From positions 868,001-932,000 of the forward strand of contig OZ281494.1 of NCBI GenBank assembly GCA_965637545.1: a DNA stretch of 64,000 nt. Reading direction: 5' to 3'. The notes below the pieces were generated by a model. That model was not told the DNA's origin and ran no database searches. It worked only from the letters and a program-made list of their open reading frames with translations. Shown here piece after piece: positions 5,646-51,200 of the stretch. This DNA is from Phallusia mammillata (Eukaryota). A program made the position numbers and the translations under genes. The number at the start of each line of letters is the position of its first letter. Positions within the stretch are counted from its first letter, which is position 1.

Positions 5646-8600
5646 ATCTTGTGGATGCAAACACTGCACAGGAGAAATGTTCTTTGCTGGGTGGAAATCT
5701 TGCAATGACTGATGACCCACAGATCAACACAACTCTCACTCAACTCATGACAGAAAAATACACAGCAGGTTTACATAGAAGCAAGAGATTAACACTGGGA
5801 ACATGAAAGTTAGACATAATTTAAACACGCGTTTTATACATACTTTGAGAAATTACTTTAAAAAAAACAGGATTTGCATTATTTTTGCACATACATCTTT
5901 TACTATTTGTGCCAAATGTGATTGTAATTATTGAGTGCAAAAATACAGCAATAAAAATTAAGTAATCGTAAATATCTTTAGATTTGCAGAGGGTTTATAT
6001 CTTTTGTGATACAGCAGACAATAGACGATACAAATACTCATACAATCCGACTGAAGTGGGTTGGACTAGTACAAAATCTCTCGGACATCTGTGGTATTTC
6101 GACTTGTACAAAACGTAACACGTTGTAATATGATCAAAATCCTAGCATGAAAACATACGTTTCGTCCTCCAGCAATCCCGAAAACACGAGTCAAACAGTT
6201 TACTTCTGCAATGTGACAAACCCGAATGACATGAGGTGGAATGTGACAATTGGAAGAAATTGTGAATTTAAAGGTTTTGAGTTTTTCACTGCTCAGTAAC
6301 CTTTATACGTCTTCAACATAGTTCTGATAAAAAAAATCTCTTGACGGCAAATGGAATTACATTAAACAGAGCAACATTTTGTGAAACACGAAAGATGGTT
6401 GTTGCCAGAACTATAGAAGCACAAAGACACATTTTCAAATGCTATACGCCAACAAAGCCAGAATATACAAATCATAAAAAGATTTTCTATTTTTCGCCAA
6501 AACTGTAAGCTATTTATTGTGGCCTGTACAGTATCTATCTCGTTTCAACTTGGCCCTCTTGTTTTTCTTGGCGCTAGCCAAATAAACTAATTTTTTCGTT
6601 GTATTTGTTACCACAAATGTTTGTTTGCAGGATGGGCATTTCAATATTCCTTATTTTCCGACACCAACACAAAGAAAATTCAAAAAGAAATATTTAACTA
6701 TGCAAGATACTCACAGCCATATTCAAGCAAATTACGAGGTGTCAATGAGCCGTATGAAACTTTTACCAAATACGAAGGATCGTTCCTGGCACCAAGTGAG
6801 CGTTAGGTCTCGATACAATAAAACGGCAGATAAACGTTTCGTTTGAAAAAATAGTATTTGCAAATTGTTTTTCAGATATTAACGTTTTCGTTGGAGTTCG
6901 TTACAACACGTCGTTGAATGGTTGGTATTGGAGCGACGGATCTCCGGCAAACTTTCCAGTTTCCCACGTTACAACTTGCCAGCAGGGAGCGTTGCATTAT
7001 GGGATCGGATGGGAGCAGTCAAGCATGAACTGTAGTGGGGAACCGGCTTACTACGCTTGCCAAGCTAAATGTAAGTAATTATAAAACGATTTGTTTGATC
7101 ATATTTTTATTCCAAATTACATACTGGGCTTCATACAGTTTCGGGAATCGTTTAATTGTTTCTTTGCATTTTTGTTTCCTATTTATTGGTACATTTGCTT
7201 CACTTTTTTTTCCAACAAGTTTCACCACATGTTTTAACATTTTTACCACTATTGGCATTTAACATTTTTGGTCCATTTTAGTCAAAGCCATTGTGGAGAA
7301 GTTTAACTGCAATGCAACAACTGTGGTGGTCAGTTGGACTGGACTTGATCAGATCATCAACAACAACAATGCAAAGGTAATGATGTATGATCAAATGTTT
7401 TTTTTTGGTTTTGTATACTATGTCTCTTTGCAAATGTTGCTTTCAGGTCGCAATTTATGTTTTGGGAATAAACAAGAAAATCGTTGCACCGTATGCAGAT
7501 AAAAACACAATTATTGGAAACCTAAGCTTTGCAACAGAATATAACATCGCTGTAAGTTTTTAAAGCATTAAGCAAGTTTGGTTCGATTGATATAGAATAT
7601 ACAACAACCTAAACAATTAAGTTGCTTTGAAGCAGGGTTCCAAACAGGCGACCCGCGGGCTCATGCGGCCCTGCAAGAGTTTTTGTGCAGCCTGCGAAGT
7701 AACTTTCAGAAGTTACGTGTTTTACACTGGCGGAATAACCTGTCAGACCCCTGTCAGTTTAACAACAAAAATCGAAACAGCTCCTCTTTAGAATCAGCAA
7801 TTGTGATTGTTGCGTCATATTATTTACATTGTTACGTCATTGTAGGTCATTGTGTTCATACAAAGTTGGTTCTTTCACTTTGCTACACTGTTTATCTGTT
7901 TGTTATTTTTTTTTATAAAGAACGAACATTTAGGTTTTTAATCATGCATCATTTTTGTTGTCACGTTACAGTGTAACAAATGTTTCGTTAGTGCGACCCT
8001 CGATTTACTTAAAAGTTTGTTTTTGACACCCCTGCTTTAAAGCACAATTGGATTCGATGGGTCACCGTCCAAGTTGTAAATTATGAGACGAAAAACATGT
8101 TATAATAACGGCTTGTTACTAAGCCTAATCGTTGATATTGGATCTCTTAAAAAAACATAAAGCTTTGTTAACCTGAATCCATTCGATCTTTACAGATCAT
8201 AGCAATACTTACTGGATACCCAGTCATGAACGTCTCAACTTCCACATCAGTAACAACTTATGGAAACCCCCCATCGAGTTGCTATCCTTCAGGTAAGTTT
8301 ACGTGTTTGAGTTTTTATTAATGTGCGGGTGAAAAAAGGTATTTAAGTGATTTTGTTAGTAAACACGACTGCGGAGACATTCATGTGCGACGCAACAACT
8401 GTGCTTGTCAGTTGGAATGGACTTCATCAATTCATTAACGAAAACGCACTAACAGCACAGGTTTAAAGGATGTTTGTGTGTTGCCAAACGGTTATTTGAA
8501 ATCGATGTACATTCAGGTTGAAATTCAAGTGCACGGTTTAAATCAATCAATCTATGTTCCGTATTCAGCCCATTCGACATTAATAGAAGATCTCATTCAA

Positions 8601-48237: not shown

Positions 48238-51200
48238 ATGAAGGGAAATTATCTGAGCACTATTTTGGTTTTGGTTTTGATTCAGTTTTCGGCAGGACAA
48301 GGCAATAGTAAGTAATTCGAAAAATAACCATCAACAACGTAGAAACTATTGGTAAATAAAATAGTAATGGAGCAAAATTATCGAATGAAAATTATTATTG
48401 GAAGGTGTTGCTCTTGTGCATGCTGCAAATTTTGCACATGTTTTTTGTAATTTAAACTAAACGTTTAAGATGTGTCATTAAAAGCTAAGGCGTATAACAA
48501 ACGATTAGTTCAGTTCAAAAACATAAAGGTGCAATGATTTGAATTACCCTTTAAACATTGTTAAACATACAATATTTCAGGCTACAACAAATCATAAAAT
48601 CAAAACAAAGACTAACTCACCAATCTCCAGAGTATGCTAACGCTTTTATTTTTAGTTTGCAACAAGACCATGCAAGCAGTGAAGGACAGTGTGTTGATAT
48701 TATCTGACGATCTTGTGGATGCAAACACTGCACAGGAGAAATGTTCTTTGCTGGGTGGAAATCTTGCAATGACTGATGATCCACAGATCAACATAACTCT
48801 CACTCAACTCATGACATACAAATACACAACAGGTTTGTGTAAATGCAAAATAATGATATTGTAAATCAGGGGTGTCAAACTCGTGAGGTTCGAGGGCCAC
48901 ATTGCAGTTTGAAAATTATGCCGAGGGCCGCATGTGATTTTTAAACAAGAAAAAAAAAATTATACACTTAAGAAACCTTTTCGCTACGCCGGCCGCGTTG
49001 CAGATCCCACCAACGGCGCCAATTACCTGCTGGTTTTTGTTTCAAAATTACAGATGTAAAGAAATAGTTTCATATATACCAACTACTGACGTCCCCAAAG
49101 CCCAGATTGATTTCCAACTTCATGCAGAGATTGAGCTGCACAGTATGAGGATCAGTTTTAACTGTTTATTACGTCATAATGTATATTGTGACTCTTTTGG
49201 TACCTGTTTTTTCGCATTGTTTGCACACAATAGGCCTACAAAAAAGTCTGACGCATATGGCTGCTTGGCTACTCTTTTCAGTAACACAAAATCTGTTTAG
49301 AGCAGTTTCAACATTTTTGCCAAAGGTTTTTTACATCACGGTCGCCAGTACATTATTTTAATGAACATGTTTACGGCCGCACATATATCTGACAAAATAA
49401 TACATATGTTGTTGAGTGTTCGTGGGCCGCATTGGAGGGCCGCATGCGGCCCGCGAGCCGCGAGTTTCACACCCCTGTTGTAAATAGTTTATATTTCAAC
49501 AACAGTCTATGTTGTAACCATAGTTGAGCATTGTGGGTTATTTTTAAACAAAAAAAAAACATTTTTAATTGTAATTCAACTATATTGAATAAACATTTGT
49601 TTCAGATTTACAACGGGTTTATATTTTTTACGAAGACGAAAATAGGCGATACAAATACTCTTATAATTTGAATGAAGTGTATCCTTGGAAAAGTACAGAA
49701 TCTCTTGGACATCTGTGGTATTTCGATTTGTATGAAAGGTGAACCCCTTTATAAGATTTTTTGTCGACAAATAATTTGTCAAATTTGTCCAACAGTAATA
49801 TCGAAAACACGATGGAATCAATTTATTTCTGCGATGCTTGGACAGAACCGAGTTACAAGTGGAGAGTAGATATTGGAACAACATGTGAAAGACAACAACC
49901 TAATGGAAATTGGAACGGTGTGTGTTGAAACCAATCAATTTCTTAAGATGTTGCAAACAAGCTGATCGCAACTTAATCATACTATAGCTGATTCATTCGG
50001 TCAGCATCATTTTAACTGATTCATTTAATCAGCAACAATAAGCACAATTGTTACAATGTGTGATATTTGCAGGATGGACGTTACAGTTTTCTTTGTTTTC
50101 CGACACTAACAAGAGGAAACGCCAAAAAGAAATATATAACTACAAAGGCGGCATAAATTCGTATAAGTTGCGGAATGTTAATGCGTCATATGAAAGTTTC
50201 AATAAATACAAAGGATCGTTCCTGGCACCAGGTAAGCGATTTTAATTAAAAAGAACACACAAAGCAACCATAATAGTTTGGGTAAACCAACACAAGCATT
50301 TTAAGATATCAATGTTCTAATCGGAGCTCGTTACAACACGTCGATGAATGGTTGGTATTGGAGCGACGGATCTCTGGCAAACTTTCCTGTTTCCAACGCC
50401 ACAACTTGCCAGCAGGGAGCGTTGCATTATGGGATTGGCTGGGAGCAGTCAAGCACGAAGTGCAGTGGAGAACCAGCTTACTACGCTTGCCAAGTGAAAC
50501 GTGAGTTATTGTGAACAGAATTATTTAAATCAAGTAAACGATATACAGGGCTTCATAAAACATTTCTCTAATTTTTTGATTCGTTTTTGTACTCGCCGAG
50601 CCAAACAATCCAGTTGTGTCAAAATTACAGATTATGAATGCAAAATAATACTGGTTTGTGTGATTCCTCTGTAGTCATATGCATTTTACCTTTTGATTCA
50701 CATTTAGTCACGGCTGGTGTGAAGAAATTTAAATGCAACGCATCAACTGTGGTTGTCAGTTGGACTGGACTTGATCAATTCATCAAGAATAATAATCTCA
50801 ATGCAAAGGTATTGCTTTATCACATCATGTTTTTGTTAACATGCAGGTGTCATGCCTTTTTACGAATATTGTATTCAGGTTGAAATTTATGTTTTGGGAA
50901 TCAACAAGAAAATCTTAGCACCTTATGCAGATCAAAACACAACCATTGGAAACCTAAGCCTTAAAACAGAGTATAGCATCACTGTAAGTAGTGTAAAAAT
51001 ATTCACCGAACAAATCAAATCGAATGAAATACAATAAACGACAGACATGCACTTTTAACTCAAATTTGAATTTAATTTATGTTGTTCGATGGCTGGATTG
51101 AGTTCGAGAGACTACTAATGATGCAACCAAAAATATAATATGCCATAACCGGTTTGCTTCATCTAAATTTATCTATTTGTACTGGAGGCTGGAGCCCTTC

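Follow-up and report, generated by a model that had tools for sequence, protein, structure and literature searches.

What kind of segment can lie inside a C-type lectin-like domain (CTLD), and does it vary in the way an immune variable region varies? This question is raised by a 64,000-nucleotide stretch of the genome of the ascidian Phallusia mammillata (GenBank GCA_965637545.1, contig OZ281494.1, positions 868,001-932,000, forward strand), which we call the window. It contains six tandem genes on the + strand, G2 to G7, with N-half exons starting at about 5.6, 12.5, 20.5, 33.0, 38.5 and 48.7 kb. In each gene an exon for the N-half of a CTLD and an exon for its C-half are split by an insert of three exons. 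The best explanation overall, and one that we consider probable, is that the insert is an old module nested in the CTLD of receptors resembling those of natural killer (NK) cells, that it is under purifying selection, and that the CTLD exons on either side of it have been homogenised.

Exons 2 to 6 were modelled in the six copies from reading frames and AG/GT splice borders (see the table below). Exon 2 (177 nucleotides) encodes the N-half and ends in phase 1; exon 6 (195 nucleotides) encodes the C-half and starts in phase 1. The insert comprises exon 3 (127-133 nucleotides), which starts with DLQRVYIF, exon 4 (101-125 nucleotides) with the motif IYFC...W.V.IG..C and a Cys pair of its own, and exon 5 (159-165 nucleotides) with the motif W.FQYSLFSD...KLRSVN...GSFLAP. 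Together they measure 396-414 nucleotides, a multiple of three, and encode 132-138 residues. Exons 3 and 4 jointly, and exon 5 by itself, form symmetric phase 1-1 units. A preliminary description of this DNA had quoted motifs from the family; all of them lie on the + strand where it had located them, and its five example strings from genes 2 to 6 are exact.

The split was examined by a profile search against all PDB sequences. CD94 matched the ectodomain profile in two colinear pieces, profile positions 2-49 pairing with CD94 2-49 and profile positions 100-160 with CD94 58-119 (overall E 1.3e-4). CD94 has 8 residues at the site where the present family has about 130. This site lies between helix alpha2 and strand beta2, the WIGL strand, which here reads V[LF]IGAR. 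The two-piece colinear match therefore shows that the split is real and falls between these two elements. The top PDB matches were NK-receptor-type CTLDs, namely CD94, Dectin-1, CLEC4D, KLRB1, CLEC5A, CLEC9A and NKG2D; Dectin-1 and the KLR chains are also colinear with both halves.

The databases searched held no full-length protein from P. mammillata. Homologues from Clavelina lepadiformis stood in for the spliced window proteins in the Pfam, AlphaFold and homologue searches. These are P0014 (592 residues, with a short Tyr tail), P0015 (1090 residues) and P0021 (1151 residues), the latter two with tandem protein tyrosine phosphatase (PTP) domains. Lectin_C (PF00059) matched P0021:30-292 in two stretches with 22.8 bits, against a gathering score of 22.6, and the match to the C-half begins at profile position 41. 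The scores of P0015 (20.0 bits) and P0014 (16.1 bits) fall below the gathering score, as does that of window exon 6 alone (14.7 bits, E 0.05), which gave the only match, a weak one, in a Pfam search of single window exons.

The four core cysteines occur in the canonical order. C1 (EKC) is confined to exon 2, C2 (TTC), C3 (MNC) and C4 (YYAC) are confined to exon 6, and exon 4 carries a separate pair. This distribution fits the interpretation of the domain as a split CTLD. A contiguous CTLD has 110-130 residues; here the halves alone sum to 123, and 132-138 residues stand between them. None of the copies has an EPN, QPD or WND motif, the corresponding positions reading NFPVSN and GWEQ, so that the domain is not a classical Ca2+-dependent carbohydrate-recognition domain. 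Nor does it have the group V type II orientation with a C-terminal CTLD: the signal peptide is upstream of the CTLD, which is itself N-terminal, and the transmembrane segment follows downstream. Judged from the sequence, the CTLD is genuinely split by the insert. The exon models and the CD94 match thus bear out what the preliminary description had claimed about the split, and the missing Ca2+ motifs are as it had reported.

A transcript of one paralogue speaks to whether the insert is present in the mRNA. A 739-nucleotide contig comes from a run, X4, that carries the same species label; the run is not recorded as RNA, and such runs contain spliced contigs. Positions 1-162 of the contig align with exon 2 of G3 and positions 570-739 with exon 6. 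After correction for a few extra end bases, 414 nucleotides lie between the exon ends, which is the sum of exons 3, 4 and 5 of the G6/G7 type; in the genome exons 2 and 6 are at least 770 nucleotides apart in all copies. The mRNA of this paralogue therefore includes all three insert exons. One could still imagine that exons 3-5 are a cassette, and that skipping it joins exons 2 and 6 in frame to give a canonical CTLD of 123 residues, both forms being made. The phases would allow this, with exon 2 ending and exon 6 starting in phase 1 and the units between them being symmetric, and the synonymous conservation of exon 2 described below could reflect splicing signals. However, the sole contig that bridges the two exons has the full 414 nucleotides, and no direct joint of exon 2 to exon 6 is listed among the contigs, which drop rare isoforms. 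The annotated product of P0014 includes the insert, and the insert is under purifying selection and conserved across ascidians. We regard a skipped cassette as highly improbable.

The conservation of the insert is evident in the Clavelina proteins. P0014, P0015 and P0021 carry the module at the same site with the anchors kept, and across the CTLD and the insert they share 30-35% of their residues with the window proteins. Three introns of the P0014 gene, one at each border of the insert and one after exon 3, match the window positions in the protein; the intron between exons 4 and 5 is absent, and these two form one exon. This gene (L001:10001-14031) is single and lies between unrelated genes (GIY-YIG, HSP20), outside any tandem array. 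Homologues of exons 3, 4 and 5 also occur as separate exons on four tunicate-like metagenome contigs (L004, L006, L007 and L008). When P0014, P0015 and the insert profile served as queries, only Clavelina proteins and short fragments were returned, and a HMMER search of the whole library with the exon 6 profile returned mainly short open reading frame (ORF) fragments and two long proteins. The module is common to Clavelina and the tunicate-like contigs and is therefore old and not peculiar to this array. It would be an old, constitutive part of the protein.

The preliminary description called the insert hypervariable and saw in it a ligand-binding module of possibly new fold, with a framework and variable loops. 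Taken in its strong form, this proposal means a module that is positively selected as in the variable region of an immune receptor. The pattern on which the proposal was built is present. Among the paralogues, exons 2 and 6 have nucleotide identities of 0.93 and 0.88, and exons 3, 4 and 5 of 0.78, 0.62 and 0.68. Fixed anchors and indels are both present in the insert, as had been described, the indels falling in four loops. The receptor genes, which have tyrosine-motif tails or phosphatases, are arranged in tandem. By the NG86 method the nonsynonymous divergence (dN) is 0.067 in the scaffold (exons 2 and 6) and 0.282 in the insert (exons 3-5), a fourfold difference that also favours the proposal. 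However, the synonymous divergence (dS) rises as much as dN, from 0.222 to 0.829, again about fourfold. The ratio of the two (omega, approximate here) is consequently almost the same, 0.30-0.31 in the scaffold and 0.34 in the insert, and maximum likelihood (ML) estimates under GY94+F3X4 give 0.40 and 0.47. When the insert was divided into anchors and cores as in the preliminary description, the anchors had an omega of 0.15 and the variable cores one of 0.45 (bootstrap 0.26-0.69), with no replicate above 1. Omega exceeds 1 in one 15-codon window only (1.6), at the 3' end of exon 4; this window is rich in indels and poorly aligned.

These values indicate that the insert is under purifying selection, with an omega of about 0.3-0.5 at roughly neutral synonymous rates. 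The preliminary description had itself named an insert omega no higher than that of the scaffold as the result that would speak against it, and this is essentially what we find; hypervariability, if taken to mean diversifying selection, is not supported. The contrast between insert and scaffold comes mainly from exons 2 and 6, whose synonymous divergence is unusually low, and the variability of the insert looks like ordinary old divergence and not like an immune-style hypervariable region. A positively selected variable module is, on these numbers and on the conservation of the module between distant ascidians, decidedly unlikely. The absence of a Pfam match at threshold, of a PDB sequence match and of a structural match could be cited for its new fold, but the structural models described below are too poor to carry that part.

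The low synonymous divergence of the scaffold is confined to its exons. In sliding windows dS is 0.00 over about 30 codons in the middle of exon 2 in all pairs, and exons 2 and 6 have third-codon-position identities of 0.91 and 0.80, compared with 0.62-0.68 in exons 3-5. The 80-nucleotide intron flanks are merely about 0.4-0.6 identical. In exon 2 of G3, G4, G5 and G7 the blastn blocks, which are 93-96% identical, stop no more than a few bases from the splice sites, and the adjoining introns cannot be aligned. For the scaffold the tree has a star-like shape, a length of 0.96 substitutions per codon and internal branches of 0.006-0.028; that of the insert is deep, measures 3.42 substitutions per codon and groups G6 with G7. 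In this young pair dS is alike in scaffold and insert (0.23 and 0.21). Exons 2 and 6 would thus have been homogenised among the paralogues (dS near zero to 0.3, star-like tree), hence their invariant look. As read from the sequences, short-tract gene conversion restricted to the exons that are still similar is the most probable cause; the insert exons would be too diverged for conversion and would have retained an older divergence while under purifying selection. In exon 3 of G5 (33341-33472) the variable loop looks mosaic: its first part, YEDKHE, is like G6/G7 and its second, YKYSNNSAEE, like G3, and this suggests recombination inside exon 3.

The identity of the insert was sought by sequence searches and by structure prediction. 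The three Clavelina inserts match a single Pfam family, DUF7023 (PF22894), all in the same region of the profile (about 25-112 of 185). The scores of 21.4, 23.2 and 25.0 bits (E 1.8e-5 to 2.2e-4) fall short of the gathering score (27), the matched part amounts to under half of the profile, and single window exons give no match. Neither DUF7023 nor PF22894 was mentioned in the literature searched, and the insert profiles matched nothing in the PDB. A first AlphaFold run, with the CTLD and insert of P0021 and only three sequences over the insert, reached a pLDDT of 47. A second run, on the insert alone with a 29-row alignment of exon fragments from the window and from loci L004, L006, L007 and L008, gave a pLDDT of 48.9, a pTM of 0.46, eight strands and no helix. 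Both runs predict mainly strands in the insert, and fold searches with the two models returned no structural match. The insert can be described as a conserved module that is predicted to be mostly beta and stapled by cysteines. Concerning the possibly new fold of the preliminary description, the insert does lack a match at the Pfam threshold or in the PDB, but models with a pLDDT of 47-49 are too poor to call the fold new or known.

It may be asked whether the insert was built from pieces of the CTLD itself, either by internal duplication of the C-half or from a tandem CTLD duplication that now forms a nested or permuted pair, so that no new fold is needed. In whole-ectodomain alignments MAFFT repeatedly stacked fragments of exons 3, 4 and 5 on the C-half hairpin, which consists of a strand, a loop and a W-x-hydrophobic strand. 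Exon 4 has two cysteines spaced Cys-x13-18-Cys with a Trp about 10 residues past the first, like C2...W...C3, and C1 is found in the N-half alone and C4 in the C-half alone. The best matches of the language-model features of the insert alone were Lectin_C clusters, with scores of 0.87-0.88; in the ESM Atlas scores count from 0.9 and lower ones are leads only, and all scores in these searches were below 0.9. In profile-profile comparisons against a column-shuffle null, exons 3 and 4 were not significantly similar to the C-half (p 0.73 and 0.52), nor was exon 3 to exon 4 (p 0.19). Exon 5 resembled the C-half with an empirical p of 0.04, but this fails correction for four tests. The Pfam model Lectin_C is silent on the insert, and the run on the insert alone predicted no helices. 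An origin from CTLD pieces is therefore improbable. A specific version, with exons 3 and 4 as a degenerate C-half and exon 5 as an N-half, fared no better: hhalign comparisons with profiles of 6, 9 and up to 17 sequences were not significant against the column-shuffle null, and the distant homologues of exon 5 show no helix-like N-half pattern.

The same unit of strand, variable loop and W-x-hydrophobic strand, which is found in each insert exon, can be read in another way, as one blade per exon of a small lectin module like a three-bladed beta-propeller. The strand-only prediction for the isolated insert agrees with this idea, and DUF5648 appeared on 2 of 10 shape rows of the Atlas. We give the propeller a probability that is at best slight.

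The wider architecture of the proteins was followed in the window and in Clavelina. Signal-peptide exons lie upstream of the CTLD (for example at 20330-20398). Downstream of it there are 2-6 repeats of about 100 residues and then a transmembrane segment (at 35.7 kb in G5 and at about residue 500 in P0014). The membrane-proximal repeats had no Pfam fn3 match in P0014:278-470, in P0021:288-560 or in one window repeat exon, and no PDB match. A fibronectin type III identity is unconfirmed for them, the label 'FN3-like' reflecting repeat length and motifs read by eye only. PTP exons follow G4 (27.0-31.1 kb), G6 (43.1-45.8 kb) and G7 (53.4-56.4 kb); window positions 27687-27896 match Y_phosphatase with E 2e-27, and Clavelina P0015 matches PF00102 in two stretches with E 9.8e-105. 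The Y_phosphatase domains are C-terminal to the transmembrane segment, as in receptor-type PTPs (RPTPs). G5 and G3 have, instead of a phosphatase, a short tyrosine-motif tail, YENY...NPTYETI. The genes would accordingly encode an ascidian family of type I membrane receptors, with an ectodomain made of an NK-receptor-like CTLD free of Ca2+ motifs and of the membrane-proximal repeats, and with a cytoplasmic part that takes one of two forms, a tandem tyrosine phosphatase or a short tail with tyrosine motifs.

These elements can be combined into a proposal for how the receptor might work. The roughly 130 residues encoded by exons 3-5 would form a module of their own, built mostly of beta strands and set into the CTLD between alpha2 and beta2. 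It would have conserved aromatic and hydrophobic anchor strands, a single cysteine pair inside it, and four loops that carry indels. The established topology of the CTLD would place this module beside the top sheet, which is the ligand face of NK-type CTLDs. There it would extend or replace the ligand-binding surface and would give each paralogue a specificity of its own, read out through the phosphatase or the tyrosine-motif tail. We infer a ligand-binding role and paralogue specificity from this placement.

Several points weigh against an old nested module on a homogenised scaffold. The separate all-beta domain draws on weak predictions (pLDDT 47-49) and on sequence patterns, and the transcript support is one assembled contig of a paralogue, the middle of which was not seen letter by letter. 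The dS of the insert is near saturation, which makes the omega values approximate. Gene conversion was read from the pattern of divergence and not from a formal test, and selection on synonymous sites in exon 2, for example for a splicing or RNA element, is an alternative that gives the same pattern. The functional part of the proposal derives from CTLD topology. Finally, the three broken copies and a stop codon in the phosphatase of G7 mean that part of the array may be decaying and not functional.

A bolder reading goes further than the explanation we prefer. The insert might be an undescribed fold that forms the specificity surface of germline-encoded ascidian recognition receptors, in which old, maintained variants sit on a homogenised scaffold and are coupled to phosphatase or tyrosine tails. 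We think this unlikely; if true, it would mean a chordate system for the recognition of non-self or of partners that is based on a domain-in-domain lectin. Few recognition domains have been studied as much as CTLDs. Should the module influence ligand binding, the window would contain a natural case of domain-in-domain engineering of the lectin scaffold in the invertebrates most closely related to vertebrates, and a candidate family of recognition receptors with alternative signalling outputs. The analysis also carries a caution: the contrast of an invariant scaffold with a variable core can come from homogenisation that is confined to exons, without diversifying selection.

The positions of the modelled exons are listed in the table.

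Table. Modelled CTLD and insert exons of genes G2-G7 (positions in the window).
Feature	Position	Strand	Description
G3 exon 2	12496..12672	+	CTLD N-half: beta0/beta1, alpha1 with Cys C1, alpha2; ends in phase 1; colinear with CD94 2-49
G3 exon 3	12885..13011	+	First insert exon, DLQRVYIF start, phase 1 to 2
G3 exon 4	13071..13174	+	Second insert exon, INFC ... W.V.V..C, one Cys pair, phase 2 to 1
G3 exon 5	13503..13667	+	Third insert exon, W.FQYSLFSD ... KLRSVN ... GSFLEP, phase 1 to 1
G3 exon 6	14152..14346	+	CTLD C-half: INVFIGARY, WYWSDGS, Cys C2, C3, C4; Lectin_C positions 42-97, E 0.05; CD94 58-119
G4 exon 2	20455..20631	+	CTLD N-half
G4 exon 3	20798..20930	+	Insert
G4 exon 4	20988..21091	+	Insert
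G4 exon 5	21807..21965	+	Insert
G4 exon 6	22047..22241	+	CTLD C-half
G7 exon 2	48656..48832	+	CTLD N-half
G7 exon 3	49606..49738	+	Insert
G7 exon 4	49796..49917	+	Insert
G7 exon 5	50073..50231	+	Insert
G7 exon 6	50306..50500	+	CTLD C-half
G2 exons 2-6	5648-5768, 5982-6114, 6173-6273, 6631-6795, 6876-7070 (span 5648..7070)	+	
G5 exons 2-6	33025-33201, 33342-33474, 33560-33684, 34001-34134, 34216-34410 (span 33025..34410)	+	
G6 exons 2-6	38487-38660, 38735-38867, 38953-39074, 39200-39358, 39434-39628 (span 38487..39628)	+	

Across exons 2-6 only G3, G4 and G7 are intact; G2, G5 and G6 are broken. Exon 2 of G2 lacks its first 18 or so codons and lies beside a head-to-head junction, an inversion breakpoint, with a minus-strand copy. 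This copy, G1, is a further member of the family on the - strand (1916-5326 and 368-574); it has membrane-proximal repeats and a PTP exon and no CTLD exons, and it meets the 5'-truncated G2 near 5330-5648. Exon 5 of G5 measures 134 nucleotides: a run of 15 A at 34044-34058 shifts the frame, and about ten codons are deleted besides. The run of A is either a genuine disabling mutation or an error of the assembly in homopolymer length. Exon 2 of G6 has an in-frame TGA at 38528-38530 and a Tyr in place of the first Cys, with the insert exons open. In G7, despite its intact exons 2-6, the exon for the first phosphatase domain (D1) has an in-frame stop at 53705-53707 (MVW*ENS).

Two other elements were seen in the window. 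An intron of G3 contains a repeat (15800-16248) with inverted arms, 49 nucleotides at 92% and 24 nucleotides at 96% complementarity. It has a very high contig depth in RNA-type runs with many joints of the 'opposite strands' kind, and it looks like a dispersed foldback element or one resembling a miniature inverted-repeat transposable element (MITE). Downstream of G7, an ORF of 282 residues on the + strand (57728-58576) matches Pfam DUF7041 with E 1e-12 and is probably part of a mobile element.

How does this family compare with known systems? With RPTPs that have tandem D1/D2 domains it shares PTP exons with the active-site motif after the transmembrane segment, in P0015, P0021, G4, G6 and G7. 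It differs in that several copies have a short tyrosine-motif tail in place of the phosphatase. We know of no described RPTP class with a CTLD ectodomain, and the literature searched contained none, nor any description of an ascidian CTLD-RPTP family or of a CTLD interrupted by an inserted or nested domain.

The NK-receptor-type CTLDs (CD94, Dectin-1, NKR-P1/KLRB1, CLEC2D, NKp65/NKp80) are the best PDB matches to both halves. Like the present family they have all four core cysteines and a beta2 motif that contains IG, and they lack EPN/QPD and WND; the NK gene complex likewise consists of tandem arrays with varied signalling tails. However, the CTLDs of these receptors are contiguous, with 115-130 residues, and belong to type II proteins, whereas the CTLD of the window family is interrupted by 132-138 residues, is N-terminal on a type I protein, and is accompanied by membrane-proximal repeats and, in some copies, by a tandem phosphatase.

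Large insertions are known from other proteins with the C-type lectin (CLec) fold, namely the family of formylglycine-generating enzymes and the variable proteins Mtd and TvpA of diversity-generating retroelements. These have in common with the window family that the CLec fold carries extra segments and shows variable residues on a stable scaffold. They are bacterial or enzymatic, however, their insertions are at other sites, and their variability arises by mutagenic retrohoming or is absent, whereas the insert of the window family is a discrete, exon-encoded module in an animal receptor.

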